Positions 5,543-35,782 of a stretch of 64,000 nucleotides of DNA are shown one piece after another; the stretch's first letter is position 1; each line of letters begins with the position of its first letter. The notes below the pieces were generated by a model, which saw only the letters and a program-made list of their open reading frames with translations, was not told the origin of the DNA and ran no database searches. This DNA comes from Caecitellus pseudoparvulus (Eukaryota; Protista; Bigyra: Bicosoecida). The DNA lies in NCBI GenBank assembly GCA_965644315.1, contig CBFFRQ010000079.1, forward strand, positions 1 to 64,000, written 5' to 3'. The position numbers and the translations under genes were made by a program.

Positions 5543-8500
5543 TCAAATCAAGTCTTTCAGGCTCGAAAACTTAGCTGCTTGTTGCCGCACAGTGTCTGGG
5601 ACTCTGCGAACGTCAGTCAGGCCCAGCAGCTCACGCACGATGTCTGTGTGGTCCATGGCGCATGCCCCTCGGAAGCCAGCCTCAGGCCCATCCCCATCCG
5701 CTGCGTGCACATCCACCTCCCGCGCCCCAGTCAGGCCCAGCAGCTCACGCACGATGTCTGTGTGGCCATTGTCGCATGCCCATCGGAAGCCAGCCTCAGG
5801 TCCACCCCAAGCCGCCGCGTGCACATCCACCTCCCGCGCCCCAGTCAGGCCCAGCAGCTCACGCACGATGTCTGTGTGGCCATAGCGGCATGCCTTTCGG
5901 AAGCCAGCCTCAGGCCCACCCCCATCCGCTGCGTGCACATCCACCTCCCGCGCCCCAGTCAGGCCCAGCAGCTCACGCACGATGTCTGTGTGGCCATAGC
6001 CGCATGCCCATCGGAAGCCAGCCTCAGGTCCACCCCCATCCGCCGCGTGCACATCCACTGCCCGTGCCCCAGTCAGACCCAGCAGCTCACGCACGATGTC
6101 TGTGTGGCCAAAGGCGCATGCCACTCGGAAGGCGGCCTCAGGTCCAAACACATCCGCCGCATGCACATCCACCTCCCGCGCACCAGTCAGGCTCAGCAGC
6201 TCACGCACGATGTCTGTGTGGCCCCTGGTGCAGGCCCATCGGAAAGCGGCCTCAGGGCCCTGTTGGTGAAACCCAGGCAAGACCTCAACATTTCCTTCCG
6301 CATGTACATCCACTGCCTCATCCCCCGTCAATGACAGCAACTCGCGCACTCTCGCAAGCTCCTCCTCCTTGCACGCTTCCACAAACGCTGTGGTGTTCTC
6401 CTCGCTGAACTTCACTTGCTCGGCAGCAACCTCCGACTCTGTAGCCGGTACAGCCTCAGCTTGAGCTGCCTCAGCCTGACCTGCCGCGCCACCTGCCTGC
6501 TCACCATCAAGCACACTCCGCACAGCACTCTCCACACCTTCCAGACGACCCACTTCACCCCCACTTCCTTCACATGCCATCGCATATGCACCCATGCAGC
6601 AACCACTCCCTCCCCGCCCCAACACCTCCAACGCGCTCGTCAGTGCATGCTCATCACCTTCACCACTGCCCACGAAGCTCGACACAGCGCCCGATCCACC
6701 ACCCAACGCACCACCTGCCACACCAAGCACCTCACGCAGCACACCCGACACACTTCCACCCTCGCCATCACCGCTGCCGCCTTCAGAGCGACCTGTGTCA
6801 CACACACCGCCACATGCACCCAGCACCACCTCACACCCACCCCCATCCAGTGCGCCCACCAGATCACCCACACTGCCACTCCTCACACCCACCACCACAA
6901 AGCTCCCCACACCCACACCACTCAGACTCACTCCGCACGCCTCCGCCACAGCACACACACCCAACACCCTCACAGCCACGCGCTGCTTCACATCCAGCCC
7001 AACATCGCCCCACGCTTCATCCTCCAGGAACACCCTCAGCGGCCACCCCGCCTCACACTGCACCTGCACCGTCACCATGCTCCTCTGGCCGAGTGGCTCA
7101 TCAGCCCTGCCTGCTGTACTGCTGTGTGCCAGTGCTGCTCTGCGTGGTGTCTGTGCCATCCGCGGTAGTCCATGCGCGATGCGAGTCGCTTCGCCACGTT
7201 TCACAGCGCCAACACTCGTGGCAAGGGCTGTCACACCCGCCTCCACACTCGCTGCCCACTGCTCCACATCCCCAGCTCCACCCACATCCTCATCCACGAT
7301 CTCAACCCTCCCACTGTACACACTCACACCCTTGCCATTCATGCACTCCAAGCCGCTCGACAAGTCCAAGCCACACACAGCCTTCACCTTCCGACCACTC
7401 ATCACCGGCGCACACCCCAACAGCCCACGCAACTCCTCCACTGCACTCGCAGCACACTCCAAGTGCTTCGCGGCACTCTCACTCCTCAGATCGCCTGCCG
7501 CCTCGCCTCGCAGCCAACCAGCCTGCTGCCGCATGCCAGCCAGAGCCGCATCCATCGCTGCCTCGCCACTGGCATCATGTGTGACTGAGCCACCCTCACC
7601 AGCCACAGCCACCTCCCCCCCCTCGAAGCCTTGCCACCATCGCGTCAGGTCAGCCAGCGCACCCTCCACATTCACACCGCTCCGCACACTGCTCCAAGCA
7701 CCCACAATGGCGCCCCACAGAGCGTCCCCCTCCGGCACTGCATCGGCACTCACACCAGACACCGCTGTATGAAGCACATCCACCGCGCAGAAGCACCGGA
7801 ACGACAGGTACTGCAGCGCAGCACACACACCACCTCGCTCACGCTGCCCCGCCAACAGCCCAGCCTGCTCCAACAGCGCACTCCCCGCATCACGCAGTGC
7901 AGCCTCCAGCTCCACCAGGCTCATGGCCGATGGGGCGTCATCACCTGCAGCATGCACTTCGCCACGCCCAATGGCTGCCAGTCCGAGGTTGCCGGCACCC
8001 CAGCCGGCAACCATGTTTCCCGGCAGGAGGGGCGGCGGGCAGTCCCACGCTAGTGGCACAATTGTCCCCCGCCGCCCCAACGCAGAGTAGACGACGGCAG
8101 GACCGGGCATGACAAAACCAGTCATTAGCCGGCCTCGTCACTCTCTTTCCTTTTTTTTCGAGATGGCATCGGATGATCCAGCTTCCAGCGACACGGAGGG
8201 CGGAAGCTGGGAGGACATCCACGACAAAATGATGTCTGTCAACTCCGCCAAGCAAGCCAAGGCGCTCATAACGGAGCAGGAGTTCGAGTACTGGCTGAAG
8301 TGGGCGGATTCTGAGGATTTTGGTAAGATGGAGGCCGCTTGGCGCCTCCGGGAGGTGCCCGAGGGATTCCGGGCAGATCGCATGCGATCCCTCATTGCGG
8401 GCAGAGCTTTCCGCCTCCCCGCTGACGGTGCCCCTCATCGCGCAGGCGGCTCACCACGGGGGCACGGCACGAAGCGAACCCGTCCGCGCGGTGCGAGCAG

Positions 8501-11500
8501 TGGCACGCCCTACGGCCCGCACCTACCCCCGCGCCCGACCCAGCCGGACGCAGTCGCAGGCGACCTCCCGCAAGATCCCGCCACAGTGCTTACGTGGTTC
8601 CTGCAGAGGGGAGCGACGGTGCCGAGCGAGGACGTCGCCGTGCAGCTGCAGTTCTACGTGGGCTTGGCAACGGAGGAGACATCGCCGTACGCCCTCTCCG
8701 CTTGGCCTCCACGGCGCTTCGCCGCATGGTGCAGACTCAACGGTATTCCCCCCGACCTCACCCCCGACGACATCGTGATGCATTTGCAGCGGGTCCTGGA
8801 GGCCGCGCTGGCGGGCGACGACGACTTTGGCGACGACGATGCCGGCGCCCCGTTCTTTCCCGTTTTCCCGGGCACCACACCGGATGCCGCCCGGTTACAG
8901 CCCCGTGCGGCGGCCCCGGGTCACCCCCCGGCCTCCAAGAGGCACAGGGCGGCCTATAGCCCGCAGCCCCCCTCCCCCGTGGGGCGGCGGAGCCTCGCCG
9001 GCAGTCCACCCCGAAGGCGGGTCGGCTGTTTTCGGTCACATGGGGGAGAACAGCGGTCGGTCGTCGCCAGCCGACGAGGTACTGGTCACTGTAGGCGCGC
9101 TGCGGGTCATTGGGCCGACCGCACACCCCTCGTCGGCGGTGGCCCGGGACCGCCTGTCAGCCTTGGGGGCAGTTTTCGCTGCGGGGACCACAGACGCCTT
9201 GACCACGGTGGCTGTCGAGATGGCTGAGGCTGCTGCACGAGAGGTGCCCGCAGCAACGGGCCCAGTGCCGTCAGGTACGTTCCTGTCCCGCCAGCTCCCC
9301 CACTCGCCCCGCGTGCCCGCTCCCGGCGACCCGTCCTGGCTCACAGCCCCCGGCGATGAGGTAGCCCCGCCGTCCGCGTCGGTCATGATGGACGACGCTA
9401 TGGACGTAGTGACTGCTGTACGCCTGGTGCAAGGGAGGGTGGAAGTTACAGTTGACCCAACCCATCTAGTGGCAGTAACTGGGGCGGGTGCCCTGTCGGC
9501 ATGCCACATGCTGGGCAACCGTGGGGGCGCTTGGTGGCTTGCTGCGATGACCAGGGACTTGCTGACGGCGCCTTCCGACGACCTCCACCGCTCCCTCCGA
9601 GCGTTCTGGTGGAAGTGGGCGTCCGAGGTGCCCGCCCTGGCAGACCAGCGGGGCCTGTGCCGAGCCATGGCGTGCGCACTCCTGATCACAATCGCAGTGC
9701 GGGCCGTGGCGCAGACCGCCGCTGCGTTGCCCGAAGGCCAGCGCAGGCGATGGGCCCAGCTGACGTGGGCCTCCTGGGTGGCCACGTTCCGCACTAACGC
9801 CACCATTGTCATGATGGCGTCGGCGACGGGGCAAGCACTGGTGGCCAGCTCGCTGGCGCGCGAGGCATGGGCGGCCGGGGCCGCCGCCACACCGATGCCA
9901 GGTGCGGGGGGCGGCCCGGCGCAAACCCCCGCTCGTGGCCCTCCCGCGGGGCTGTACCGGCAGGACGACCCGAGCACATTCGTGTGGTGCCCCGGGTGCG
10001 TCGGATCCGACCGGCGGCGCCGGTCGCTGGCATCCTGCCCACGCCTGGCCCAGCATGTGGCCCACCTGCGCCGGACCCACACAGTCGGAGGTAAGCCCGC
10101 AGAACTTACCCAGGCGCAGGCAGTGGCCATGCTGGTGCGCCAGTGGGAGCGGAAGGTGGCATCCAAGGGACGTGACTTCCAGCGGCGCATGCAGCCCCGC
10201 GCTGTCACCACGGCCATGGTGGAGGCAGCTCTCAGCCTCTAGGAGGTGGGCCGGAGCGCGGTGGTGAGAGCGACCACGGGGTACCGGGCCGTGCCCGTGG
10301 AGTGGAGGGCTGCCGCCCCGCTCTCGACAGACCACCGCGCCATGGCCGTGCTCATCGAATCAATGGTCCAGCAGCTGCATGGGGACCGTTGTTGGACTCC
10401 ACCGGGGCTCTTCGAGGACATCTTGCGTGGGGGCTTGGACTGGGGCCCCCACCCCGTGGTCTCATACTGGGGTTGCCAGGAGGCCCACGCTGACGTGTGT
10501 CCCGCATGCGGCGAGACCACTTCCAGATTACGGCAGCTTGAGCGGTGCGCAGCCATGCGACTGCTCACCGTGGTCACGCTGCGCGGGTGGGACCCCGCTT
10601 GGCTGCTGTTCCGCCGCCCCCCGGCAGCGGCATCCCCGTCCTCGGCATACGTGCTGCAGCCGCACGACGAGCGGGCGGTGGCAGCGGCCTATGACGCCTT
10701 CGCGGCTGCGCGCGTGCTGCAGCCGGTCACCCCCCAGCAGCTGCAGCAGCACCGAAAGATGGGGGGCCAGCCGCTTCTGCCTTCGTTGTCACGACATGGG
10801 CCCCCCAGCCGGGCGTCAGCGACGAAGCTCTGCGACAGTGGGCTGCTGCGAACCCAGGCGAGGCGGTGCAGGCCGCCAGCTCTTCCCGCGCGCCCGCCCG
10901 CCCGAGCCGCCTGTTCCGGGCCAAGCAGCGGGTGGTGTACGATCTGGCAGCCGTCAACCAGGCCTCAGTGAGCCCCCCATTCCACTACCCCACGCTGGAG
11001 AGCTGGGCGCTGCGCCTCCCGCCGAACTCGGACTGTGTTGTCCTGGACGTGGAAGCAGGGTACACGGCCATCCCCATCGCTCCGTCGGGCGCCGGACTGT
11101 TCACCATGCTCGCCCAGGGCAGGCCAGCCTTCCGCATGCTTCGGATGGCCTTCGGGTACAGCCCGGCCGGGGCCATTTTCTGCTTTTTTTCTGGACTTCT
11201 GGGCGCCAAGATCGAAGCGGCGTTCCCAGCAGGGCATGTGGTTGTGTACGTAGACGACGTCGGGCTTGGGGGAGCTACGTTGGGGCCACGGCCATCGATC
11301 GTGCCCAAGATAACTCAACTGTTCGAGGACGTGGGCTTCCGGGTGTCGCGCAAGAAGACGCAAGGGCCACAGCGCGTCGTTCAGTACTTGGGGATGGTGG
11401 TCAGGTGTGCCCCGTGTGGGGTGTACCTTGAGTGTCCTCAAGCCAAACGAACTCAGCTGCGGTGGCAGCTGGCCGCGGTCCTTAATCGCCTCGGCGCTTG

Positions 11501-14052
11501 CTCCACCATCCCCAAGCGCGTTTTCGCCGCGGTCACAGGGCGCTTGCACGGCCTGTCGGCCGTGGTGCCCCACGCAAAACAAACGCTGTCGCTCTTGTAC
11601 GACACCATGCGCACACACAAGTACCGCGTCGGCCCCCCGGCGCTCTCGTGCCTGTCCCCCCGGCGTCGCACGGGGCCCTGCGGACCCTCCTTGAGGCCCT
11701 CGGTGGGCCGTTATCGACGGGCCCGATGCGCCCGCTCTCCCCACTGTCAAGCAGGTGGCGCGCCGCCCTCTTTGGCTCGTGCGACGCGTCGGGGGAAGGC
11801 GGGCTGGGGGCAACAGTGTCGAGGTGGGCAGGGCCAGGAGAACGCACAGACTCCGCTTGGTACGCGTCCATGCGCATCCCCGGCACAGCCCCGGGCGAGG
11901 AGCTCGTGGGAGCCTCCACGATGCTGGAGCTGTACGCAATCGCCTTGGCTATGGCAATGGCGCGGCATGTTTTTCCCGAGCCGGGGCCGCTGCTGCTATG
12001 CCTAGCTGCGGACAGCCAGGCAGCGGTGGCGCTGGCGCGACGAGGGTACAGCAAGCACAGCCGTGAACTCACGCGCGTCTGCGGGGTCCTCGAGCGGGTT
12101 TCCCGCGTTTTGGACGTCCACTTGGCGCCTCGGTGGATCCCGAGGAGCCTGAAGTGGCGGGCGGACGCCCTCAGCCACCCCGAAAGGGTGGATAGCAGCA
12201 CACCGGCAGCGCTCGGCCTCCCGCCAGGGCAACCAGCCGAGCTGGAGGTATCAGCAGGGGGAAGCAGCGCCGCTGAGCGGTGGCATGATGTGTCCCTAGA
12301 CGTAGGGCCGTCGGGAAAGGCCGGGGCGGGCACCGCGTGGATTCACTCAGCTCAACTCTCCGTCGCCCTGCACAGACACACTCTGGATAAGGAAGCAGAC
12401 CTTCTGGCAGATGATCAGGGCCATCCCCGCGTCCCCGATCAGCAGGATTCACCAACATAGGCTGGCAAAGGGGACGGTGGTCAAGTACGTTCGCGCGGTT
12501 GCTGGCCTGATCAGGGCCGCTCCAGCACCCCGGGACAGGGCGCGGACCATGGTGGGCATCTTAACGGGCGGCGTGGCCGCAGGCAGATGGGCCCCCCATC
12601 GGGCGAAGCAGATCCTGGCGCAATGGGTCGGTGGTTTTAGGTATCTGGGCCTGCCAATCCCGTCGCTAGCCCCGCTGGGGCTCACAGTCGGCAGCATCTG
12701 CCGGGCAATCCGCCGGCTCCACCGAGGGAGAGGGGAGCAACACCGCCGCCCTATCAGCAAAGAACAAGTCATGGAGGCCATGAAGCGGGCATGGGACGGG
12801 CCACACCTCGGGAGGCATGCCCCAACTGCCGCCGCAGCTATCTACATCGGCTTTCATGGCATGTGCAGGCCGGGAGAGCTCCGGGGCCTGCGATGGGAGG
12901 AGTTGCACTTCGGGCGGGCGGGCCCCCTGCAGTGGGTGGAGGCCAGGGTCACGGATAAAACGCACCTGAGTGCAAACCGCCACATCCAGGTGGTGCGCCA
13001 GGCCGAGTGGGCGGGGGCCTTCGACCGCCTCCGGGAGCAGGCCCGGGACAAGCGGGGAAGCCTGCTCCCAAGGTGGGCGTGGCTCAGCCTGCAAGGCATC
13101 CTGAAGGCTGTAGCGGGCGTGTCCTTGGCCCACCTGAGACCCGGGGGCAATATGTTCTGGACAGGCCGGGCCCCCGACGTCTTGGTGGAGCACGCGGCGG
13201 GCTGGGCGGCTGGCTCCCCCACCCGGGCACGATACTACACCCAGGGGGGGAGGGGGCGAGGCTGTGGCACGAGGCCATGACACCCAGGGGAGGAAGCAAG
13301 CATTGAAAAGTATTGGCGGGTGCCGCAAGGAGGCGTCCCCTCCCCCAAGAGATGCAGCGAGCCCTGGTGGCCGCTGGCATAGAGGGGGGAGGGGACGGCC
13401 TCGAGGCGGGCCCAGTTCAATGCATTTCGATTGCCACGCACAACGCACCAACACGAGGGAACCGAGGTTGCCGGCACCCCAGCCGGCAACCATGTTTCCC
13501 GGCAGGAGGGGCGGCGGGCAGTCCCACGCTAGTGGCACAATTGTCCCCCGCCGCCCCAACGCAGAGTAGACGACGGCAGGACCGGGCATGACAAAACCAG
13601 TCATTAGCCGGCCTCGTCACTCTCTTTCCTTTTTTTTTCTTTTTCTCGATTGGCGGGTGCCGCAAGGAGGCGTCCCCTCCCCCAAGAGATGCAGCGAGCC
13701 CTGGTGGCCGCTGGCATAGAGGGGGGAGGGGACGGCCTCGAGGCGGGCCCAGTTCAATGCATTTCGATTGCCACGCACAACGCACCAACACGAGGGAACC
13801 TCGCAGTGCAGGGCCGTGGTCCATGACGCTGCCCGGCAAGCACTGCATCTTGCCCAAGCATGCCGCCACCACCTCCGCCTGCTTGTCGTCGGTGCCTGTA
13901 GTGGGTGGTGCACTGCGCTCCATGACTTGTCTTGTTGCTGCTGCCTGAGGCGTGGGGGACGGGCAGGGCGCTGTGTGCTGTGGTGTGTGTGCGACATGCT
14001 CTGTCGCAAGTGCTGGCGAAAGCGAGGCACCATGCCTACACCCACGCACCAT
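5543..14052 (-). CDS. Ankyrin-repeat paralog ANK1 (cap + 6 x 38-aa repeats), 5' region split by Ngaro copy 1 (host parts 5543-7982 and 13799-14052)
   Basis: GPEAxFRxACxxGHTDIVRELLGLTGAREVDVHAADxx repeats. Host sequence gccagt|cctcgcag is continuous in the paralog at ~30070. The Met shared by all four paralogs (MSLVELE) is at 7924, just downstream of the insertion. Confidence 0.85.
8164..10242 (+). CDS. Ngaro ORF1 (gag-like), apparent frameshift in C-run ~8967
   Basis: ORFs 8109-9227 and 8827-10242 join in frame if the C8 run of copy 2 is used. C-terminal WCPGC..C..H..H cluster. Confidence 0.7.
10243..12460 (+). CDS. Ngaro ORF2: reverse transcriptase + RNase H (breaks at homopolymers ~10761 and ~11633)
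   Basis: RT motifs KQRVVYDL, VLDVEAGYTAIPI, MAFGYSPA, YVDD, VQYLG. RNase H motifs CDASGEGGLG, LELYAI, ADSQAA, WIPRSL.WRADALS. Confidence 0.9.
12411..13280 (+). CDS. Ngaro ORF3: tyrosine recombinase
   Basis: GFHGMCRPGEL (catalytic R), DKT, AHLRPGG, AGW..SPTRARYY (catalytic Y). The 3' end is uncertain because of a G-run. Confidence 0.9.
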   Translation: MIRAIPASPISRIHQHRLAKGTVVKYVRAVAGLIRAAPAPRDRARTMVGILTGGVAAGRWAPHRAKQILAQWVGGFRYLGLPIPSLAPLGLTVGSICRAIRRLHRGRGEQHRRPISKEQVMEAMKRAWDGPHLGRHAPTAAAAIYIGFHGMCRPGELRGLRWEELHFGRAGPLQWVEARVTDKTHLSANRHIQVVRQAEWAGAFDRLREQARDKRGSLLPRWAWLSLQGILKAVAGVSLAHLRPGGNMFWTGRAPDVLVEHAAGWAAGSPTRARYYTQGGRGRGCGTRP

Positions 14053-14662
14053 GGCAACGGATGGCAGAGGGTCTAGTCAGGCGTAGCTGTGCTGTAAAGC
14101 CGACTCCTGCGGGGTGATGGCAGTGGACGCGTGCATTGGTGCTGTGGGAAGGCGTTGTCGCAGCTGACGTGCGAAGGAGCAACTTCCGCACTTGCACCAG
14201 TGCAAGCTCACCTGTGGCGGCCAGAAGTGGAGACAAGGCAGAAGACACGCTGATGTGCAGATGCCCAATGAACCCACAAGTGAAAGTGGGAAGTGGATGA
14301 GGAGCAATTTGATGCAAGACATGTGAAGGGTGCCCCGCTCCGCTCGATGCGGTGCCCATCATCTCAGCAAGAAAGGTGCGGAACTAGCTATCTGGACATC
14401 CGCAAGATCCCCGTTCGAGTGCTGACGGGAGCTGCGCCAAGGCGCGGAGTGCGATGGAGGGGGTCGACTCGTGCGCTCCGAGCAGCGCTGTCCGTGCACG
14501 GCACTGGGCGGGGCAAAACCGCCCGCTCTGCTGTGCCCGCACTTATGCGTGTAAGGGTTGCGGCCTTGTCGTGTCTGGCAGTGTGGCTCCGTCACCCTTC
14601 CTTGCCCACTCGATATTCATTGGCGTGGTGGCGATTGCTCTGTCCCAAGCCACAACCAAGCC

Positions 14663-16059
14663 ATGGCGCTGTCCAGCGCCTCCATGGGGGCACCCGTCTT
14701 CCAGCTGGTGCCCCTCGCAGGTGGAACTCTGGCTGTTTCAGGCGGTGGCAGCTCCAAGACTGGCATTGAGAATGCCCTGGTGCGCAGGCGGGCATTCGAC
14801 GGCTGCGAGAGGCGTGCAAATTCCGCAACCGCCGCTGTTGTGCTCCACAGACCATGGTGCACGTGGAGAACACCGGCACCAACAAAGTGGAGCTGGCGAA
14901 AGGCACTGCGTTCCTCTCGGGCAGCACCTTCATCACGCACGTGGCAGTGTCGGAGGACGTGCGTGCCGGCGCAGCCGACGTGGCAACCACTTTTGCACCT
15001 CCCACGGCGACTTTCGCAGGGCAAGCGCGTGGCAGGGGCGGCTGGAGACAGCATCGTCGTGTTCAACCGCGACGGCGAGAGTGGCAGGTACGGGAGCCGG
15101 CAGCCAGGTGGCTGGGCGCCGCCCTGAACACCGTGGCAGTGGCGAGCGTGGGGAGCTGCCCCCCACCGCCTGGCGTGGCGGCGTGGCTGGCTGGGGATGA
15201 GCGCCTGTTCGCCCTGGCCCGGGCAGCCTGTGTGCAGCTGGCGGACGGGACGCTGAGCAGGGAGCAGGGCACGGCTTTGGCGCCGGTGCTGCTGTTCACG
15301 GCGGTGGGGCTGTACGCCACGACGCCGCCCAGCTCCCGCAACACCATCCCGCCCCACCTCGCCGAGCGCACTGCTCGCTTGGCCGGCAAGTCCACCCTGC
15401 TCGTGGGTGGCGTGGAGGTGGTGGGCGGCAAGGCGGTGCAGCGTGACAGCCCGCCCTCCACACACACCGCCCACGACGACGGTGGTGGTGCGCGGGACCC
15501 GCTGTTCTGGCTGCTGCAGCGCCTCAGCAACACGGCAGTGCACAAGGGCGGGCCGGCAGCTACAGCGGCGCTGAACGTGTTCGGGGCCATGGCTGGGCAG
15601 GTGCCTCAGGCAGACCTGCAGCGCTACGTGGTGCCGGTGGCGCGGGCAGTGTTCCGCACTGTGCAGGCGGCAGAGCACGTGGCCAGTGACCCCCGCCTGG
15701 CCGACGCGCCATCCTGGTCAGAGCAAGGCCAGCAGGCAGCCGCTGCAGCAGAGGCAGGCGCATTGGCGTCGGAGGTCATGGAGGCGGTGCAGGGTGCCAT
15801 GGGCGCAGATGTGTTCCTGACGGCATACAACGGCGAGCGGCGGGCCAGGGTGGCGGCGAAGGAGCGGCGGGCGAAGCAGGTGGCCCAGGAGGCGGTGGTG
15901 AACCCGGCAGCAGCTGCAGCACGGCGGAGTCGGAAGGCACAGGCGAAGAAGCGCCACGTGGCGAAGCGCATGGACAAGGTGAAGGTGCTGCGAGGCGGTG
16001 GTGGGAAGGGCAGGAAGCGTGCGAGGGAGGCGGAAGAGGGGCGTTGGTGTGTGGTGTAG
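14663..16059 (+). pseudogene. SEC12(5')::UTP20(3') chimera, copy A
   Basis: Starts MALSSASMGAPVF..GGGSSKTGIEN as in the gene at 36396. After 15097 it reads DPLFWLLQRLS...ALASEVMEAVQ...NPAAAAARR (UTP20-like). Confidence 0.75.
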
Positions 16060-16715
16060 AGGGGTGGGGCAATGCACGCGTGGGAGCGGTGGGTGTGGGG
16101 AGATGTTGCTGAGGTGTGTTGTTGAGTCTTGTGAGGTGGATTTGGGTGTGGTGTGTGCTGGTGTGGAGGTGGGTGTCAGGTTTGCCACATGGTGAATTTC
16201 CCTCGTGTTGGTGCGTTGTGCGTGGCAATCGAAATGCATTGAACTGGGCCCGCCTCGAGGCCGTCCCCTCCCCCCTCTATGCCAGCGGCCACCAGGGCTC
16301 GCTGCATCTCTTGGGGGAGGGGACGCCTCCTTGCGGCACCCGCCAATCGAGAAAAAGAAAAAAAAAGGAAAGAGAGTGACGAGGCCGGCTAATGACTGGT
16401 TTTGTCATGCCCGGTCCTGCCGTCGTCTACTCTGCGTTGGGGCGGCGGGGGACAATTGTGCCACTAGCGTGGGACTGCCCGCCGCCCCTCCTGCCGGGAA
16501 ACATGGTTGCCGGCTGGGGTGCCGGCAACCTCGGTTCCCTCGTGTTGGTGCGTTGTGCGTGGCAATCGAAATGCATTGAACTGGGCCCGCCTCGAGGCCG
16601 TCCCCTCCCCCCTCTATGCCAGCGGCCACCAGGGCTCGCTGCATCTCTTGGGGGAGGGGACGCCTCCTTGCGGCACCCGCCAATACTTTTCAATGCTTGC
16701 TTCCTCCCCTGGGTG

Positions 16716-25355: not shown

Positions 25356-26096
25356 GGCTTGTCTTGTTGCTGCTGCCTGTGGGGGAGGGAGGGGTCAGGG
25401 CGCTGTGTGCTGTGGTGTGTGTGCGACACGCTTTGTCGCAAGTGCTGGCGAAAGCGAGGCACCATGCCCACGCCCACGCACCATGGCAATGGATGGCAGG
25501 GAGTCTTGCCAGGTATGGCAGTGCTACGTAGGTGGATCCTGTGGGGTGGATGCGGTGGGCAGGGTGTGTTGGTGTGGCGGGGAGGCGTTGTTGTGCTTGA
25601 CGTGCAAGGGAGCAACTTCCGCACTTGCACCAGTGCACGCTCACCTGTCGCGGCCAGGACTGCAGGCGAGGCGCCAGACACGATGATGTGCCGATGTGCA
25701 GTGACACCACAGGTATGTGTGGGAATTGGTTGGGGTCCATTTTGGTGAATGGTATGTCAAGTTGTGTCCGGCTCCGCTCGATGCGGTGCGCATCATCTCA
25801 GCAAGAAAGGTGCGGAACAAGCTATCTGGACATCCGCAAGATCCCCGTTCGAGTGCTGACGGGAGCTGCGCCAAGGCGCGGAGTGCGATAGAGGGGGTCG
25901 ACTCGTGCGCTCCAAGCAGCGCTGTCCATACACGGCACTGGGCAGGGCAAAACCGCCCGCTCTGCTGTGCCCGCACTTTTGTGTGTAAGGGTTGCGGCCT
26001 TGTCGTGTCTGGCAGTGTGGCTCCGTCACCCTTCCTTGCCCACTCGACATTCATTGGCGTGGTGGCACCTGCTCTGTCCCAAGCCACAACAAAGCC

Positions 26097-27480
26097 ATGG
26101 CGCTGTCCAGCGCCTCCATGGGGGCACCCGTCTTCCAGCTGGTGCCCCTTGCAGGTGGTACTCTGGCTGTTTCAGGCGGTGGCAGCTCCAAGACTGGCAT
26201 TGAGAATGCCCTGGTGCGCAGGCGGGCATTCGACCACTGCGAGAGGCGTGCAAATTCCGCAACCGCCGCTGTTGTGCTCCACAGACCATGGTGCACGTGG
26301 AGAACACTGGCACCAACAAAGTGGAGCTGGCGAAAGGCACTGCGTTCCTCTCGGGCAGCACTTTCATCACGCATGTGGCAGTGTCAGAGGACGTGCGTGC
26401 CGGCGCAGCCGACGTGGCAACCACTTCTGCACCTTGCACGGCAACTTTCGCAGGGCAAGCGCGTGGCAGGGGCGGCTGGAGACAGCATCGTCGTGTTCAA
26501 CCGCGACGGCGAGAGTGGCAGGTACGGGAGCCGGCAGCCAGGTGGCTGGGCGCCGTCCTGAACACCGTGGCAGTGGCGAGCGTGGGGAGCTGCCCCCAAC
26601 CGCCTGGCGTGGCGGCGTGGCTGGCTGGGCATGGGCGCCTGTTCGCCCTGGCCCGGGCAGCCTGTGTGCAGCTGGCGGACGGGGCGCTGAGCAGGGAGCA
26701 GGGCACGGCTCTGGCGTCGGTGCTGCTGTTCACGGCGGTGGGGGTGTCCGCCACGACGCCGCCCAGCTCCCGCAACACCATCCCGCCCCACCTCGCCGAG
26801 CGCACTGCTCGCTTGGCCGGCAAGTCAACCCTGCTCGTGGATGGCGTGGAGGTAGTGGGCGGCAAGGCGGTGCAGCGTGACAGCCCGCCCTCCACACACA
26901 CCGCCCACAACGACGACGGCAGTGCGCGGGACCCGCTGTTCTGGCCGCTGCAGCGCCTCAGCAACACGGCAGTGCAGCAGGGCGGGCCGGCGGCCACCAC
27001 GGCGCTGAACGTGTTCGGGGCCATGGCTGGGCACTTGCCGCAGGCGGACCTGCAGCGGTACGTGGTGCCGGTGGCGCGGGCAGTGTTCCGCACTGTGCAG
27101 GCAGCAGAGCACGTGGCCAGCGACCCCCGCCTGGCCGATGCGCCATCCTGGTCAGAGCAAGCTCAGCAGGCGGCCGCTGGAGTGGAGGCAGGTGGCTTGG
27201 CATCGGAGGTCATGGAGGCTGTGCAGGGTGCCATGGGTGCAGATGTGTTCTTGACGGTGTACAACGGCGAGCGGCGGGCCAGGGTGGCGGCGAAGGAGCG
27301 GCGGGGGAAGCAGGTGGCCCAGGAGGCGGTGGTGAGCCCGGCAGCAGCTGCTGCACGCCGGAGTCGGAAGGCGCAGGCGAAGAAGCACCACGTGGCGAAG
27401 CGCATGGACAAGGTGAAGGTGCTGCGAGGCGGTGGTGGGAAGGGCAGGAAGCGGGTGTGGGAGGCGTTGGTGCGGTGCGG
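26097..27480 (+). pseudogene. SEC12(5')::UTP20(3') chimera, copy B
   Basis: Paralogous to 14663-16059; junction at 26531. Confidence 0.75.
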
Positions 27481-27682
27481 AGGGGAGTGCAGTGAAGGTG
27501 AGGGGGGGGTGGGGTGCGTGGGAATGGTGATGAGGTGTGATGCGGTGTGGTGTGTGCGGTGGATTGTGGTGCGGTGGATTGTGGTGCGGTATGGGCAGAG
27601 GTGGAGGTGGGGCAGGTGTGCTGGTCTGAGGTGCGTGCCAGGTTTGTCACATGGTGCATTGGTCTGTGCTTGGTGCATGGGA

Positions 27683-30325
27683 TCAAATCAAGTCTTTCAA
27701 GCCCTCAAACTTGGCTGCTTGCTGCCGCACGCTGTCTGGGATCCTGCGGTGCCCCGTCAGGCCCAGCAGCTCACGCACGATGTCTGTGTGGCCCCAGCGG
27801 CATGCCACTCGGAAGCCAGCCTCAGGTCCATCCCATGCCGCCGCATGCACATCCACTTCCCGCGCCCCAGTTAGCCCCAGCAGCTCACGCACGATGTCTG
27901 TGTGGCCCCAGCGGCATGCCATTCGGAAGGCGGCCTCAGGTCCAGCCCCATCCGCCGCATGCACATCCACCTCCCGCGCCCCAGTCAGGCCCAGCAGCTC
28001 ACGCACGATGTCTGTGTGGCCATGGAGGCATGCCACTCGGAAGCCAGCCTCAGGTCCACCCCATGCCGCCGCATGCACATCCACCTCCCGCGCCCCAGTC
28101 AGGCCCAGCAGCTCACGCACGATGTCTGTGTGGCCATGGAGGCATGCCACTCGGAAGCCAGCCTCAGGTCCATCCCCATCCGCCGCATGCACATCCACTG
28201 CCCGCGCCCCAGTCAGGCCCAGCAGCTCACGCACGATGTCTGTGTGGCCCCTGGCGCATGCGCCTCGGAAAGCGGCCTCAGGTCCAGCCCCATCCGCCGC
28301 ATGCACATCCACCTCCCGTGCGCCGCTCAGGCCCAGCAGCTCACGCACGATGTCTGTGTGGCCAAAGGCGCATGCCACTCGGAAAGCGGCCTCAGGGCCC
28401 TGTCTGCAAAACCCATCCAGCACCTCAGCATTTCCTTCCGCATGTACATTCACTGCCTCATCCCCCGTCAACACAAGCAGCTCACGCACTCTCGCAAGCT
28501 TCCCATCCTTGCACGCTTCCACAAACTCAGCGGTGTTCTCCTCACTGGACCCCACTTGCCCAGGGGAGTGCCCTGCCTCCGCCTGAGCTACACCATCAGC
28601 TGCCTGCTCCCCATCGAGCACACTCCGCACAGCACTGTCCACACCTGACAGACGTCCCACTCCACCCCCACTTCCCTCACACGCCATTGCGTATGCCCCC
28701 ATGCAGCAACCACTCCCTCCTCGCCCCAAAACCTCCAACGCCCTCGACAGTGCATGCTCACCACCTTCACCGCTGCCCACGAAAACTGAACCCACGCCCG
28801 ATCCGCCACCAAGCGCACCACCTCCCACACCAAGCACCTCACGCAGCACACCTAACACACCACCACCGTCACCATCAGAGCGACCTGTGCCCCACACACC
28901 GCCACACGCACTCAACACCACCTCACACCCACCTCCATCCAGTGCCCCCACCAGGTCACCCACACTGCCACTCCTCACACCCACCACCACAAAGCTCCCC
29001 ACACTCACACCACTCAGACTCACTCCACACGCCTCCGCCACAGCACACACACCCAGCACCCTCACAGCCACTCGCTGCTTCACATCCAGCCCAGTATCGC
29101 TCAACGCTTCATCCTCCAGGAACACCCTCAGCGGCCAACCCACCTCACACAGTACCTGCACTGTGACACTGCTCCTCTCGCCAACTGGCTCATCAGCCCT
29201 GCCGCCTCCACATATGTGATTCAATGCTGCTCTGCGTGGAGTCTGCGCCATCCGCGGCAGGCCATGGGCGATGCGAGTCGCTTCGCCACGTTTCACAGCG
29301 CCAACACTCGTGGCAAGCGCTGTCGCACCCGCCTCCACACTTGCTGCCCATTGCTCCACATCCCCAGATCCACCCACATCCTCATCCACGATCTCAGCCC
29401 GTCCACTGTACACACTCACTCCATTGCCGTTCAGGCACTCCAAGCCGCCCGACAAGTCCAAGCCACCCACAGCCTTCACCTTCCGACCACTCATTGCAGG
29501 CGCACACCCCAACAGACCACGCAGCTCCTCCACTGCACTCGCTGCACACTCCAAGTGCTCCGCAGCACTCTCACTCCTCAGATCGCCTGCCGCCTCGCCT
29601 CGCAGCCAACCAGCCTGCTGACGCATGCTGGCCAGAGCCGCATCCATCGCTGCCTCGCCACTGGCATCATGCGTGACGGGGCCACCCTCACCAGCCACAT
29701 CCACATCCGCCGCCTTCAAGCCTTGCCACCATCGCGTCAGATCAGCCAGCGCACCCTCCACGTTCACACCGGCCCGCACACTGCCCCAAGCACCCACAAT
29801 GGCGCCCCAAAGTGCGTCCCCCTCCGGCACTGCATCAACACTCACACCAGATGCCGCCTGATGAAGCACATCCACCGCGCAGAAGCACCGGAACGACAGG
29901 TACTGCAGCGCAGCACACACACCACCTCGCTCACGCTGCCCCGCCAACAGCCCAGCCTGCTCCAACAGCGCACTCCCCGCATCACGCAGTGTAGCTTCCA
30001 GCTCCACCAGGCTCATGGTCGATGGGGCGTCGCCTGCAACAGGCGCTTCGCCACGCCCAATGGCTGCCAGTCCTCGCAGTGCTGGGCCATGGTCCATGAC
30101 GCTGCCCGGCAAGCACTTCATCTTGCCCAAGCATGCCGCCACAACCTCAGCCTGCTTGCCGTCGATGCCTGCAGTGGGCGCTGCACTGCCCTCCACGGCT
30201 TGGCCTGTTGCTGCTGCCTGAGGCGTCGGGGAGGGGCAGGGCGTTGTGTGCTGGCCAGTGTGTGCGACACGCTCTGTCGCAAGTGCTGGCGAAAGCGAGG
30301 CACCATGCCCACACCCACGCACCAT
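27683..30325 (-). CDS. Ankyrin-repeat paralog ANK3 (cap + 6 repeats)
   Basis: 880-aa ORF; 114-bp repeats at ~27760-28400. Confidence 0.9.
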   Translation of the reverse strand: MVRGCGHGASLSPALATERVAHTGQHTTPCPSPTPQAAATGQAVEGSAAPTAGIDGKQAEVVAACLGKMKCLPGSVMDHGPALRGLAAIGRGEAPVAGDAPSTMSLVELEATLRDAGSALLEQAGLLAGQRERGGVCAALQYLSFRCFCAVDVLHQAASGVSVDAVPEGDALWGAIVGAWGSVRAGVNVEGALADLTRWWQGLKAADVDVAGEGGPVTHDASGEAAMDAALASMRQQAGWLRGEAAGDLRSESAAEHLECAASAVEELRGLLGCAPAMSGRKVKAVGGLDLSGGLECLNGNGVSVYSGRAEIVDEDVGGSGDVEQWAASVEAGATALATSVGAVKRGEATRIAHGLPRMAQTPRRAALNHICGGGRADEPVGERSSVTVQVLCEVGWPLRVFLEDEALSDTGLDVKQRVAVRVLGVCAVAEACGVSLSGVSVGSFVVVGVRSGSVGDLVGALDGGGCEVVLSACGGVWGTGRSDGDGGGVLGVLREVLGVGGGALGGGSGVGSVFVGSGEGGEHALSRALEVLGRGGSGCCMGAYAMACEGSGGGVGRLSGVDSAVRSVLDGEQAADGVAQAEAGHSPGQVGSSEENTAEFVEACKDGKLARVRELLVLTGDEAVNVHAEGNAEVLDGFCRQGPEAAFRVACAFGHTDIVRELLGLSGAREVDVHAADGAGPEAAFRGACARGHTDIVRELLGLTGARAVDVHAADGDGPEAGFRVACLHGHTDIVRELLGLTGAREVDVHAAAWGGPEAGFRVACLHGHTDIVRELLGLTGAREVDVHAADGAGPEAAFRMACRWGHTDIVRELLGLTGAREVDVHAAAWDGPEAGFRVACRWGHTDIVRELLGLTGHRRIPDSVRQQAAKFEGLKDLI

Positions 30326-30938
30326 GGCAATGGATGGCAGGGAATCTTGCCAGGTATGGCAGTGCTACGTAGGTGGATCCTGTGGGGTGGATGCGGTGGG
30401 CAGGGTGTGTTGGTGTGGCGGGGAGGCGTTGTCGTGGTGGACGTGTGCGAGGGAGCAACTTCCGCACTTGCACCAGTGCACGCTCACCTGTGGCGGACAG
30501 GAGCGGAGACAAGGCACAATGCACGCTGATGTGCAGATACCCAATGAACCCACAAGTGAGAGTGGGAAGTGGATGAGGAGCAATTTGATGCAAGACATGT
30601 GAAGGGTGTCCCGCTCCGCTCGATGCGGTGCCCATCATCTCAGCAAGAAAGGTGCGGAACAAGCTATCTGGACATCCGCAAGATCCCCGTTCGAGTGCTG
30701 ACGGGAGCTGCGCCAAGGCGCGGAGTGCGATAGAGGGGGTGGACTCGTGCGCTCCGAGCAGCGCTGTCCATACACTGCACTGGGCGGGGCAAAACCGCCC
30801 GCTCTGCTGTGCCCGCACTTTTGTGTGTAAGGGTTGCGGCCTTGTCGTGTCTGGCAGTGTGACCCCGTCACCCTTCCTTGCCCACTCGATATTCATTGGC
30901 GTGGTGGCACCTGCTCCGTCCCAAGCCACACCAAAGCC

Positions 30939-32500
30939 ATGGCGCTGTCCAGCGCCTCCATGGGGGCACCCGTCTTCCAGCTGGTGCCCCTTGCAGGTGG
31001 TACTCTGGCTGTTTCAGGCGGTGGCAGCTCCAAGACTGGCATTGAGAATGCCCTGGTGCGCAGGCGGGCATTCGACGGCTGCGAGAGGCGTGCAAATTCC
31101 GCAACCGCCGCTGCCGTGCTCCACAGACCATGGTGCACGTGGAGAACACTGGCGCCAACAAAGTGGAGCTGGCGAAAGGCACTGCGTTCCTCTCGGGCAG
31201 CACTTTCATTACGCATGTGGCAGTGTCAGAGGACGTGCGTGCCGGCGCAGCCGACGTGGCAACCACTTTTGCACCTTCCTCGGCGACTTTCGCAGGGCAA
31301 GCGCGTGGCAGGGGCGGCTGGAGACAGCATCGTCGTGTTCACCCGCGACGGCGAGAGTGGCAGGTACGGGAGCCGGCAGCCAGGTGGTTGGGCGCCGTCC
31401 TGAACACCGTGGCAGTGGCGAGTGTGGGGAGCTGCCCCCCACCGCCTGGCGTGGCGGCGTGGCTGGCTGGGGATGAGCGCCTGTTCGCCCTGGCCCGGGC
31501 AGCCTGTGTGCAGCTGGCGGACGGGGCGCTGAGCAGGGAGCAGGGCACGGCCCTGGCGCCGGTGCTGCTGTTCACGGCGGTGGGGCTGTACGCCACGACG
31601 CCGCCCAGCTCCCGCAACACCACCCCGCCCCACCTCGCCGAGCGCACTGCTCGCTTGGCCAGCAAGTGCACCCTGCTCGTGGGTGGCGTAGAGGTGGCGG
31701 GCGGCAAGGCGGTGCAGCGTGACAGCCCGCCCTCCACACACACCGCCCATGACGACGACGGCGGTGCGCGTGACCCGCTGTTCTGGCTGCTGCAGCGCCC
31801 CAGCAACACGGCAGTGCACAAGGGCGGGCCGGCGGCCACCACGGCGCTGAACGTGTTCGTGGCCATGGCTGGGCACTTGCTGCAGACAGACCTGCAGCGC
31901 TACGTGGTGCCGGTGGCTTGGGCAGTGTTCCGCACTGTGCAGGCAGCAGAGCACGTGGCCAGCGACCCCCGCCTGGCCGACGCGCCATCCTGGTCAGAGC
32001 AAGGCCAGCAGGCGGCCGCTGGAGCAGAGGCAGGCGCATTGGCGTCGGAGGTCATGGAGGGTGTGCAGGGTGCCATGGGCGCAGATGTGTTCCTGACGGC
32101 GTACAACGGCGAGCGGTGGGCCAGGGCGGCGGCGAAGGAGCGGCGGGCGAAGCAGGTGGCGCAGGAGGCGGTGGTGAGCCCGGCAGCAGCTGCTGCACGC
32201 CGGAGTCGGAAGGCGCAGGCGAAGAAGCGCCACGTGGCAAAGCGCATGGACAAGCTGAAGGTGCTGCGAGGCGGTGGTGGGAAGGGCCGGAAGCGGGTGT
32301 GGGAGGCGTTGGTGCGGTGCGGAGGGGAGTGCAGTGAAGGTGAGGGGGGGGTGGGGTGCGTGGGAATGGTGATGAGGTGTGATGCGGTGTGGTGTCTGCG
32401 GTGGAATGTGGTGCGGTATGGGCAGAGGTGGAGGTGGGGCAGGTGTGCTGGTCTGAGGTGCGTGTCAGGTTTGTCGAATGGTGCATTGGTCTGTGCTTGA
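30939..32500 (+). pseudogene. SEC12(5')::UTP20(3') chimera, copy C
   Basis: Paralogous to copies A and B; junction at 31373. Confidence 0.75.
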
Positions 32501-32509
32501 AGCTTGGGA

Positions 32510-35500
32510 TCAAATCAACTCCTTCAAGCTCTCAAACTTGGTGGCTTCCTGTCGCACGCTGTCTGGGATCCTGCGGTGCCCCGTCAGACCCAGCAGCTCA
32601 CGCACGATGTCTGTGTGGCCCCAGCGGCATGCCACTCGGAAGCCAGCCTCAGGGCCAAACCGATCCGCCGCATGCACATCCACTGCCCGCGCCCCAGTCA
32701 GGCCCAGCAGCTCACGCACGATGTCTGTGTGGCCATTGCGACATGCCAGTCGGAAGCCAGCCTCAGGGCCATACTTATCCGCTGCGTGTACATCCACTGC
32801 CCGCGCCCCAGTGAGGCCCAGCAGCTCACGCACGATGTCTGTGTAGCCCCAGCGGCATGCCAGTCGGAAGCCAGCCTCAGGTCCACGACCATCCGCCGCA
32901 TGCACATCCACCTCCCGCGCACCAGTCAGACCCAGCAGCTCACGCACGACATCTGTGCGGCCATGGAGGCATGCCACTCGGAAGCCAGCCTCAGGTCCAT
33001 CCCCATCCGCTGCGTGCACATCCACTGCCCGCGCACCAGTCAGGTCCAGCAGCTCACGCACGATGTCGCTGTGGCCATTGCGGCATGCCCATCGGAAGCC
33101 AGCCTCAGGCCCATCCCCATCCGCTGCATGCACATCCACTGCCCGCGCACCAGTCAGGTCCAGCAGCTCACGCACGATGTCGCTGTGGCCATTGCGGCAT
33201 GCCAATCGGAAGGCGGCCTCAGGTCCATCCTCATCCGCCGCATGCACATCCACTGCCCGCGCCCCAGTGAGGCCCAGCAGCTCACGCACGATGTCTGTGT
33301 AGCCCCAGCGGCATGCCAGTCGGAAGCCAGCCTCAGGTCCACGACCATCCGCCGCATGCACATCCACCTCCCGCGCACCAGTCAGACCCAGCAGCTCACG
33401 CACGACATCTGTGCGGCCATGGAGGCATGCCACTCGGAAGCCAGCCTCAGGTCCATCCCCATCCGCTGCGTGCACATCCACTGCCCGCGCACCAGTCAGG
33501 TCCAGCAGCTCACGCACGATGTCGCTGTGGCCATTGCGGCATGCCCATCGGAAGCCAGCCTCAGGCCCATCCCCATCCGCTGCATGCACATCCACTGCCC
33601 GCGCACCAGTCAGGTCCAGCAGCTCACGCACGATGTCGCTGTGGCCATTGCGGCATGCCAATCGGAAGGCGGCCTCAGGTCCATCCTCATCCGCCGCATG
33701 CACATCCACCTCCCGCGCCCCAGTCAGACCCAGCAGCTCACGCACGATGTCTGTGTGGCCATTGATACATGCCACTCGGAAAGCGGCCTCAGGGCCCTGT
33801 TTTTGAAACCCAGGCAAGACCTCAACACTTCCTTCCGCATGTACACTCACTGCCTTATCCCCCGTCAATGACAGCAACTCGCGCACTCTCGCAAGCTCAC
33901 CCTCCTTGCACGCTTCCACAAACGCTGTAGTGTTCTCCTCGCTGAATGTCTCCAGCTCAGGGACTTGATCGGCAGCAATCTCCGACTCTGTAGCCGGTAC
34001 AGCCTCTGCGTCAGCTGTCTCCGCTTGACCTGCCGCACCACCTGCCTGCTCACCATCAAGCACACTCCGCACCGCACTTTCCACACCTTCCAAATGACCC
34101 ACTCCACCCCCACTTCCTTCACACGCCATCGCATATGCACCCATACAGCAACCACTCCCTCCCCGCCCCAACACCTCCAACGCACTCGTCAGTTCAAGCT
34201 TTACACCTTCACCACTGCTCACGAAGCTCGACACAGCGCTCGAGTCGCCACCCAACGCACCACCGTCCACACCAAGCACCTCACGCAGCACACTCAACAC
34301 ACCACCACCCTCACCACCACCGGTGCTTCCGTCCGAGCGACCTGTGTCACACACACCGCCACATGCACTCAACACCACCTCACACCCACCCCCATCCAGT
34401 GCGCCCACCAGATCACCCACACTGCCACTCCCCACACCCACCACCACAAAGCTCCCCACACCCACACCATCCAGACTCACTCCACACGCCTCCGCCACAG
34501 CACACACACCCAGCACCCTCACAGCCACGCGCTGCTTCACATCCAGCCCGACATCGCCCCACGCTTCATCCTCCACGAACACCCTCAGCGGCCACCCCGC
34601 CTCACACTGCACCTGCACCGTCACCATGCTCCTCTGGCCGAGTGGCTCATCAGGTCGGCCCGCTGTACAACTGTGAGCCAGTGCTGCTCTGCGTGGCGTC
34701 TGCGCCATCCGCGGCAGGCCATGGGCGATGCGAGCCGCTTCGCCACGCTTCACGGCGCCAACACTCGTGGTAAGCGCTGCCGCACCCGCCTCCACAGTCC
34801 CTGCCCACTGCTCCACATCCCCAGCTCCACCCACATCTTCATCCACGATCTCAACCCTCCCACTGTACACACTCACACCCTTGCCATTCAAACACTCCAC
34901 GCCGCTCGGCAAGTCCAACCCACGCACAGCCTTCACCTTCCGACCACTCATCACCGGCGCACACCCCAACAGCCCACGCAGTTCCTCCACCGCACTCGCT
35001 GCACTCTCCAAGTGCTCCGCAGCACTCTCACTCCTCAGATCGCCCGCCGCCTCGCCTCGCAGCCAATCAGCCTGCTGCCGCATGCCAGCCAGAGCCGCAT
35101 CCGCCGCTGCCTCACCACCAGCACCATGTGTGACGGGGCCACCCTGACCAGCTACATCCACATCCCCCCCCTCGAAGCCTTGCCACCATCGCGTCAGATC
35201 AGCCAGCGCACCCTCCACGTTCACACCGCTCCGTACATTGCTCCAAGCACCCACGATGGCGCCCCACAGTGCGTCGCCCTCCGGCACTGCATCCACATCC
35301 ACACCCGACACCGCCTGGTGCAGCACATCCACCGCGCAGAAGCACCGGAACGACAGGTACTGCAGCGCAGCACACACACCACCTCTCTCACGCTGCCCCG
35401 CCAACAGCCCAGCCTGCTCCAACAGCGCACTCCCCGCATCACGCAGTGCAGCCTCCAGCTCCACCAGGCTCATGGTTGATGGGGCGTCGCCTGCAACAGG

Positions 35501-35782
35501 CGCTTCGCCACACCCAATGGCTGCCAGTCCTCTCAGTGCTGGGCCGTGGTCCATGACGCTGCCCGGCAAGCACTTCAACTTGCCCAAGCATGCCGCCACA
35601 ACCTCAGCCTGCTTGCCGTCGATGCCTGCAGTGGGCGCTGCACTGCCCTCCATAGCTTGGCCTGTTGCTGCTGCCTGAGGCGTCGGGGAGGGGCAGGGCG
35701 TTGTGTGCTGGCCAGTGTGTGCGACACGCTCTGTCGCAAGTGCTGGCGAAAGCGAGGCACCATGCCCACACCCACGCACCAT
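32510..35782 (-). CDS. Ankyrin-repeat paralog ANK4 (cap + 11 repeats)
   Basis: 1090-aa ORF; repeats 2-5 are duplicated as 6-9 (456-bp period). Confidence 0.9.
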   Translation of the reverse strand: MVRGCGHGASLSPALATERVAHTGQHTTPCPSPTPQAAATGQAMEGSAAPTAGIDGKQAEVVAACLGKLKCLPGSVMDHGPALRGLAAIGCGEAPVAGDAPSTMSLVELEAALRDAGSALLEQAGLLAGQRERGGVCAALQYLSFRCFCAVDVLHQAVSGVDVDAVPEGDALWGAIVGAWSNVRSGVNVEGALADLTRWWQGFEGGDVDVAGQGGPVTHGAGGEAAADAALAGMRQQADWLRGEAAGDLRSESAAEHLESAASAVEELRGLLGCAPVMSGRKVKAVRGLDLPSGVECLNGKGVSVYSGRVEIVDEDVGGAGDVEQWAGTVEAGAAALTTSVGAVKRGEAARIAHGLPRMAQTPRRAALAHSCTAGRPDEPLGQRSMVTVQVQCEAGWPLRVFVEDEAWGDVGLDVKQRVAVRVLGVCAVAEACGVSLDGVGVGSFVVVGVGSGSVGDLVGALDGGGCEVVLSACGGVCDTGRSDGSTGGGEGGGVLSVLREVLGVDGGALGGDSSAVSSFVSSGEGVKLELTSALEVLGRGGSGCCMGAYAMACEGSGGGVGHLEGVESAVRSVLDGEQAGGAAGQAETADAEAVPATESEIAADQVPELETFSEENTTAFVEACKEGELARVRELLSLTGDKAVSVHAEGSVEVLPGFQKQGPEAAFRVACINGHTDIVRELLGLTGAREVDVHAADEDGPEAAFRLACRNGHSDIVRELLDLTGARAVDVHAADGDGPEAGFRWACRNGHSDIVRELLDLTGARAVDVHAADGDGPEAGFRVACLHGRTDVVRELLGLTGAREVDVHAADGRGPEAGFRLACRWGYTDIVRELLGLTGARAVDVHAADEDGPEAAFRLACRNGHSDIVRELLDLTGARAVDVHAADGDGPEAGFRWACRNGHSDIVRELLDLTGARAVDVHAADGDGPEAGFRVACLHGRTDVVRELLGLTGAREVDVHAADGRGPEAGFRLACRWGYTDIVRELLGLTGARAVDVHAADKYGPEAGFRLACRNGHTDIVRELLGLTGARAVDVHAADRFGPEAGFRVACRWGHTDIVRELLGLTGHRRIPDSVRQEATKFESLKELI

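Follow-up and report, generated by a model that had tools for sequence, protein, structure and literature searches.

A lineage-restricted family of ankyrin repeat proteins with five hypervariable residues per repeat in the heterotrophic flagellate Caecitellus pseudoparvulus

The genome of the marine protist Caecitellus pseudoparvulus comprises 30.6 Mb in 215 contigs, and the stretch analyzed here (the window) is the first 64,000 nucleotides of contig 79 (CBFFRQ010000079.1). It contains four intronless genes arranged in tandem on the minus strand, each encoding a conserved N-terminal domain of ~530 amino acids (the N-domain), a Gly/Ser/Ala-rich linker, and an array of 38-residue ankyrin repeats. 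Gene 1 reads as a chimeric open reading frame (ORF) of 860 amino acids (positions 5543 to 8125), in which homology to the family begins at 7982; the segment from 5543 to 7982 encodes most of the N-domain, the ankyrin array, and the stop codon. The ankyrin domain of gene 1 (5546 to 6403) consists of an N-cap, a 9-residue β-hairpin insert, 5 internal units (5690 to 6259), a C-cap, and a conserved tail. Gene 2 (22044 to 25355; 1103 amino acids) carries an ankyrin domain at 22047 to 23699 with 12 internal units (22191 to 23558), gene 3 (27683 to 30325; 880 amino acids) one at 27686 to 28540 with 5 internal units (27830 to 28399), and gene 4 (32510 to 35782; 1090 amino acids) one at 32513 to 33937 with 10 internal units (32657 to 33796). 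The G+C content of the four genes is 63 to 65%, the same as that of the surrounding genome.

Tandem Repeats Finder reported arrays with a 114-nucleotide period and 5.6, 12.7, 5.7, and 10.6 copies in genes 1 to 4, respectively. Extracting the units in register gave 5, 12, 5, and 10 internal units plus four C-caps, along with four degenerate N-caps, each of which is followed by the 9-residue insert. All four proteins scored above the Pfam cut-offs for Ank_2, Ank, Ank_3, Ank_4, and Ank_5 (62 to 252 bits for Ank_2, with a cut-off of 27.3), and no other credible Pfam match was found in them. They have the stacked helix-turn-helix and β-hairpin solenoid that characterizes the ankyrin superfamily; the canonical 33-residue period with a TPLH motif is absent, the period being 38 residues, with EAAFR in place of TPLH and the GH and LL-G-A-V core retained. 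In phmmer alignments to solved designed ankyrins, the repeat gains a single residue near the beginning of helix 1 and another four in the loop that follows helix 2. The 38-residue repeat is a length variant of the ankyrin fold and does not fall outside it. Among the units in the window, 18 of the 38 positions are invariant, and at 26 a single residue accounts for 90% or more of the units. N- and C-caps are present in 44 to 50 family members, giving a fixed framework closed at both ends. Following the C-cap is a basic tail, RRIPDSVRQ.A.KF..LK.LI (for example at 5546 to 5620), that is conserved in ~44 members and modeled as a short helix; it could be a docking or targeting motif. A single-sequence AlphaFold model of the ankyrin domain reached a predicted local distance difference test score (pLDDT) of 60 and was not used for mapping.

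To locate the variation within the repeat, we used 255 distinct internal units from the close subfamily. Positions 8, 11, 12, 37, and 38 have entropies of 2.7 to 3.2 bits and 13 to 19 different residues each, and the remaining 33 positions have entropies of at most 1.7 bits, most of them below 0.9. In the window units considered by themselves, the four highest entropies are at positions 8, 38, 12, and 37 (2.0 to 2.6 bits), with position 11 next at 1.86. The 255 units contain 239 distinct five-residue combinations, and one single scaffold sequence is paired with 12 of them. Mutual information between the helix and the turn positions is near that of shuffled columns, indicating almost independent variation. 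As an independent replicate, 29 units from metagenomic relatives have the same five positions among their most variable. An initial annotation, made from the letters of the window, had counted 36 copies of the repeat on a near-invariant scaffold and had listed the residues found after FR, after AC, and at the turn. The in-register extraction recovers the same number (32 internal units and 4 C-caps), every residue on those lists is present, and variation is confined to the five positions.

We then related these positions to the canonical ankyrin repeat. Positions 37, 38, 8, 11, and 12 align to canonical positions 2, 3, 10, 13, and 14 in the phmmer alignments. In designed ankyrin repeat proteins (DARPins), positions 2, 3, 5, 13, 14, and 33 are randomized. 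Four of the five variable sites thus coincide with randomized DARPin positions (2, 3, 13, and 14). The remaining one, position 10 in helix 1, precedes positions 13 and 14 by one helical turn and differs between repeats of two designed ankyrins in the same alignments. The equivalents of DARPin positions 5 and 33 are conserved here (Pro in 93% and Ala in 87%). The overlap with DARPin libraries proposed initially is therefore correct for four positions, but it has to be amended by one additional variable site and two conserved ones. Judged from the alignment, each repeat would expose two variable residues at the tip of the β-turn and three along or just after helix 1.

Having been suggested as a check of the initial annotation, site-wise comparison of nonsynonymous and synonymous change (dN/dS) was performed on the aligned repeats by three methods. 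Nei-Gojobori counts over all unit pairs gave a proportion of synonymous differences (pS) of 0.33 and of nonsynonymous differences (pN) of 0.086 at scaffold codons, with a pN of 0.56 at the variable codons. Because picking close pairs by their scaffold biases pS downwards, we cross-validated the nearest pairs, selecting them on 16 scaffold codons and measuring pS on the other 17. The ratio of pN at variable codons to pS at scaffold codons was 2.7 (range, 2.0 to 3.9), and the scaffold ω was 0.29. Parsimony counting on a FastTree tree yielded dN/mean dS values of 1.97, 2.09, 1.66, 1.66, and 1.41 at the five sites and values below 1 at 33 of 33 scaffold sites. In a purpose-written fixed-effects likelihood test (MG94-type model, 140 units) with the synonymous rate α set to the scaffold mean, the ratio of the nonsynonymous rate β to α was 4.0, 3.2, 2.1, 2.2, and 1.7 at the five sites (P values from 1.5e-4 to 6e-25), and 32 of 33 scaffold sites were significantly below 1. 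All three methods place the five variable positions above 1. As a control, the N-domains of the same genes gave an ω of 0.41 with a median dS of 0.30. For the pair of genes 2 and 3, dS is 0.086 and the adjoining noncoding spacers diverge by 6%; because these values agree, dS is not depressed by codon bias. Scaffold pS is 0.29 within a gene versus 0.33 between genes, and this similarity argues that the scaffold is ancient and that purifying selection, and not homogenization in recent times, has maintained it.

The four genes noticed at first are part of a much larger family. At least 51 matches to the N-domain are present in the genome, spread over at least 30 contigs. From the N-domain loci that were fetched we read 50 ORFs, which have 3 to 27 repeats each and 477 units in total; 44 of the 50 end in the same C-cap and basic tail. 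The repeat module by itself matches more than 200 places, and ~50 repeat-module loci have no N-domain match nearby (e.g., C25:60513, C176:30408, C8:14933, and C54:237893-262833). The open frames at the latter are 290 to 1900 amino acids long, many only 290 to 700, and represent either ankyrin-only genes or genes with other N-terminal modules. Counting N-domain and repeat-only loci together, the family has about 100 genes. Members are often clustered and often lie on small contigs or within ~65 kb of a contig end, and some are internal. We also observed a divergent subfamily (L044 to L050, on C24, C50, C23, C66, C69, and C65) with an N-domain identity of 52 to 64%, which interleaves 34- and 38-residue units and in one protein reaches 27 repeats.

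Outside this genome, relatives of the N-domain were found in 19 clusters among 1.84 billion representative proteins and in 12 among 5.8 billion clusters. All are from metagenome or Logan assemblies, and none is named; nor did a literature search find any paper describing this family. Some metagenomic relatives have Sel1 repeats after two ankyrin units, and on one metagenome contig an ankyrin member adjoins a large Sel1 protein. In relative P0005 (contig L051), two ankyrin units come after the N-domain, with nine Sel1 repeats (residues ~770 to 1090) behind them; the Sel1 repeats are mutually very alike with a few variable positions, and the same style of diversification may apply to Sel1 as a second repeat type. 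Relative P0017 (1608 amino acids, from a metagenome) has the N-domain at its C-terminal end (1163 to 1602), after 1160 residues with no Pfam match.

The arrays in the window carry traces of unit turnover and of recombination between paralogs. Within gene 4, a four-unit block of 456 nucleotides is duplicated (32771 to 33682, minus strand; period 456, 95% matches), such that units 2 to 4 are identical in DNA to units 6 to 8, and the turn pair (positions 37 and 38) is the only place where units 5 and 9 differ in protein sequence. Gene 3 is a mosaic. Its promoter-proximal 330 nucleotides are 95 to 100% identical to gene 4, and nucleotides 1083 to 1770 are 99 to 100% identical to gene 2, with identity falling to ~0.8 at the start of the repeats; its array is unlike that of gene 2 (5 versus 12 internal units). 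The spacer between genes 2 and 3 (25356 to 27682) is part of the tandem duplication unit and is 94% identical to that between genes 3 and 4 (30326 to 32509), of which a third copy lies at 14053 to 16197. From these alignments, the genes originally formed a regular tandem array with one gene and a 2.2-kb spacer per unit. No targeted-mutation machinery was apparent in the surroundings of the genes, with the nucleotide spectrum of the variable-codon changes not analyzed.

The third spacer copy lies between two retrotransposons that account for the chimeric reading of gene 1. Copy A (7983 to 13798) lies within gene 1, and copy B (16198 to 22020) is inverted relative to it and ends 24 nucleotides past the stop codon of gene 2. 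The copies are 5.8 kb each and 100% identical in opposite orientation, forming inverted arms that are 100% complementary and whose outer ends lie at 7983 and 22020. Identity this complete implies that transposition, or else conversion, took place very recently. The end of copy A supplies the first 47 codons of the 860-residue ORF. The 2.4 kb between the two elements is 90 to 98% identical to the 5' end of gene 3 plus the spacer between genes 3 and 4, and it includes the native 5' end of gene 1 (13799 to 14052, minus strand; 84 codons, MVRGC...HGPALR), which shares 90% identity with the start of gene 3. Family homology starts exactly at 7982, and the missing start, encoded at 13799 to 14052, continues into it in frame when the element is taken out. 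Thus gene 1 belongs to the family and has recently been split by a transposon.

We next considered the N-domain. In the structural model, it is helical at residues 39 to 235, mixed α/β at 248 to 435, and again helical at 459 to 554, mostly with pLDDT values of 85 to 98. Across 36 members it had no Pfam match at E values up to 1, and PADLOC, NCBIfam, and a profile-based search of the PDB sequences gave no match, nor did viral or defense profiles. A Walker A motif was not found in the N-domain of 35 of the 36 members, and the single match is not conserved. Fold searches with the full-length model (Foldseek against PDB, VIA-align wide, and ESM Atlas) returned ankyrin matches only, the N-domain not being searched alone. 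By protein language model, the neighbors of the N-domain are clusters combining ankyrin repeats with a kinase or pseudokinase, including RNase L (0.85), and a relative consisting of the N-domain only falls near kinase clusters (0.94). The order of strands and helices in modeled residues 248 to 435 could fit a kinase N-lobe. The Pkinase hidden Markov model had no match to the N-domain, and no kinase motif was found in it. We treat a kinase-like N-domain as a lead only, the language-model neighbors being the one pointer to it. No N-terminal signal-like hydrophobic stretch was present, and the only hydrophobic peak, near residue 400, is a confidently modeled core strand; from sequence, the proteins are probably cytosolic. 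In a run labeled as a metatranscriptome, the gene bodies are covered more highly than the spacers, which is suggestive only, and the three best-supported read differences in the gene 3 array fall at variable codons 8 and 37 and may stem from paralogs.

From these results, we consider it likely that the four genes belong to a large, lineage-restricted family of cytosolic binding proteins in which the scaffold is conserved and five residues per repeat are driven to change. As a binding repertoire, this reading is well supported; an immune or non-self role is plausible. Purifying selection holds the scaffold while the five residues change, and diversity arises by three routes that are directly visible in the sequence: the five positions undergo amino acid replacement, entire units are gained and lost by unequal recombination, and genes are duplicated in tandem with recombination between paralogs that puts whole arrays onto different N-domains. 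The variable groove would bind diverse ligands, most likely foreign proteins of viruses, prey, or parasites, and the constant N-domain would transmit or execute a response.

Several observations weigh against this interpretation. The N-domain has no recognizable signaling or effector motif in Pfam, PADLOC, NCBIfam, or the PDB sequences. Among the sequencing runs holding the stretch, none is on record as RNA; the one labeled as a metatranscriptome carries a flag that it is probably DNA, and the short contigs it yields are inseparable from those of paralogs. When α is allowed to be site specific, none of the five ratios falls to 1 or below, but significance is kept at sites 11 and 38 alone, and the trees used in the site tests come from recombining 114-nucleotide units, which makes their P values approximate. 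The surface placement of position 8, derived from the alignment, is putative. Finally, the transposon-disrupted state of gene 1 means that not every copy is functional.

The closest parallel to the selection pattern is found in the fungal NLR (STAND) proteins with ankyrin, TPR, or WD repeats, as in the NWD/HET family of Podospora, in which about five positions per ankyrin repeat are positively selected, on the concave face formed by the inner helix and the β-hairpin (Dyrka et al. 2014; PMC4986451). In each, near-identical repeats form a C-terminal array, their number varies, paralogs exchange them, and a few sites on the binding face are under positive selection. In both, a superstructure-forming repeat domain occupies the C-terminal sensor place (here 3 to 27 ankyrin units, or Sel1 in relatives) and is combined with different modules, with ankyrin or Sel1 repeats on the same N-domain and ankyrin repeats also occurring without it. 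In contrast to the fungal proteins, the present family has no NACHT or NB-ARC NTPase domain and no conserved Walker A motif, its repeat has 38 residues instead of 33, and its N-domain is undescribed. Whole-unit identity within a gene is ~78%, under the 85% criterion applied to the fungal repeats, with only local recent duplications, and the scaffold is kept by purifying selection instead of recent concerted evolution. Since the N-domain matches no family and lacks a conserved Walker A motif, we do not class these proteins as NLR/STAND. The analogy to fungal NLRs drawn in the initial annotation thus extends to the selection pattern (PMC4986451) but not to the architecture, which has no NOD or NTPase domain.

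Other known systems resemble the family in part. Like DARPins, the proteins have a fixed framework with N- and C-caps, and four of their five variable positions coincide with randomized ones, although DARPin positions 5 and 33 are conserved here. They are natural, however, with five inserted residues per repeat, and a large N-domain is joined to arrays that can reach 27 repeats. The LRR-ROCO and NB-ARC-TPR candidate receptors of the brown alga Ectocarpus, with fast-evolving repeats, positive selection, and shuffling of units, have been proposed as pathogen receptors (PMC3341825). They too are stramenopile families with fast-evolving, shuffled repeats under positive selection, but their repeats are LRR or TPR, their shuffling is exon based, and they have NTPase or GTPase domains, whereas the genes described here are intronless and lack such domains. 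RNase L and ankyrin-(pseudo)kinases share the language-model neighborhood and the idea of an ankyrin sensor joined to a signaling domain; the domain order is reversed here, and neither the Pkinase match nor a kinase motif is present. Large tandem families of ankyrin genes also occur in giant viruses, and in Bodo saltans virus their expansion has been read as the product of a host-virus arms race (PMC5871332). The genes in the window differ from these in being host encoded, with host G+C content and a specific N-domain.

Among the other explanations, the one that survives best is that these proteins serve the cell's own targets as adaptors, perhaps as substrate receptors or as scaffolds recruiting many different host proteins to the N-domain, so that their diversity would reflect subfunctionalization and not the recognition of non-self. 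FEM1B/C and ASB proteins, which are substrate receptors, are among the top structural matches of the ankyrin portion, and no defense-related domain was found. In addition, a transcriptome study of a heterotrophic flagellate found ankyrin repeat genes as a class to be enriched among those switched on in stationary phase (PMC7852580), a result that is not specific to the present family and would be relevant only if the species is the same. However, host partners normally impose purifying selection on an interface, and here the interface is the fastest-evolving part. Whole arrays are exchanged between recent duplicates, the genes sit in transposon-rich tandem clusters, and the family is nearly absent outside one lineage. 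We therefore judge this explanation unlikely.

It is very unlikely that the five positions are unconstrained surface residues drifting neutrally in an ordinary expanded ankyrin family. Such drift would be in keeping with sites 8, 12, and 37 not being significantly above 1 under site-specific synonymous rates, and multinucleotide codon differences and recombination can inflate rate estimates. Yet the pooled and cross-validated ratios are 2 to 4 and not 1, the agreement of dS with the divergence of the noncoding spacers shows that dS is not deflated, and the other loop and surface positions of the repeat have rate ratios of 0.1 to 0.6. The residue spectrum is also non-neutral: Gly, Arg, Asp, and Trp, the residues seen most often at the variable sites, are enriched there, and Pro and Cys are almost absent. 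A viral or mobile-element origin, such as integration and amplification of giant-virus ankyrin host-range factors, is hardly credible, for although ankyrin expansions are typical of giant viruses (PMC5871332), several ESM Atlas structural neighbors are Nucleocytoviricota clusters, and the genes adjoin retrotransposons, their G+C content is that of the surrounding genome, members lie on at least 30 contigs, the transposons interrupt family genes and do not carry them, one metagenomic relative has as its neighbor, on a cellular-looking contig, a partial gene with the annotation ribosomal protein L22e, and the N-domain matches none of the viral or defense profiles.

The recognition of diverse ligands by a binding repertoire remains our preferred reading. 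A more specific version of it would be an innate non-self repertoire that arose in a free-living flagellate independently of NLRs, in which about 100 genes place a DARPin-like sensor on an undescribed signaling or execution domain of ~530 residues, possibly a helical bundle with a pseudokinase-like module, and on other N-terminal modules; we offer this version tentatively, as a possibility that we would not yet favor. Animals, plants, fungi, and one brown alga are known to have diversified repertoires of repeat-based receptors, and to our knowledge almost nothing comparable is known for heterotrophic flagellates, the dominant grazers of the sea and hosts of giant viruses and virophages. For an organism of this kind, the family provides a well-defined candidate repertoire whose members can be counted, with the clear prediction that the five variable residues per repeat define ligand specificity, and the function of its conserved N-domain partner could reveal a signaling route that does not involve NLRs. 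If the reading is correct, evolution has reached largely the same solution as the protein engineers who designed DARPins, and the natural scaffold, with its longer loops, arrays as long as 27 repeats, and 239 observed combinations, could be of use in designing binders.

Some further features of the window were noted. A telomere was looked for at the window start and was not found. The 2.2-kb spacers contain long, homologous plus-strand ORFs (26288 to 27874 and 31130 to 32500), each with a weak, subthreshold match to UTP20_C at the same place. When reading frames were compared between the spacer copies, pN/pS was lowest (0.60) in the frame of these ORFs, by a margin that is not decisive. Just past gene 4, an ORF at 36280 to 37470 on the plus strand encodes WD40 repeats (Pfam WD40; E value, 9e-14). 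A strong negative GC skew (-0.2 to -0.4) lies exactly over the four genes (6001 to 8000, 22001 to 26000, 28001 to 30000, and 34001 to 36000), the coding strand being G rich.

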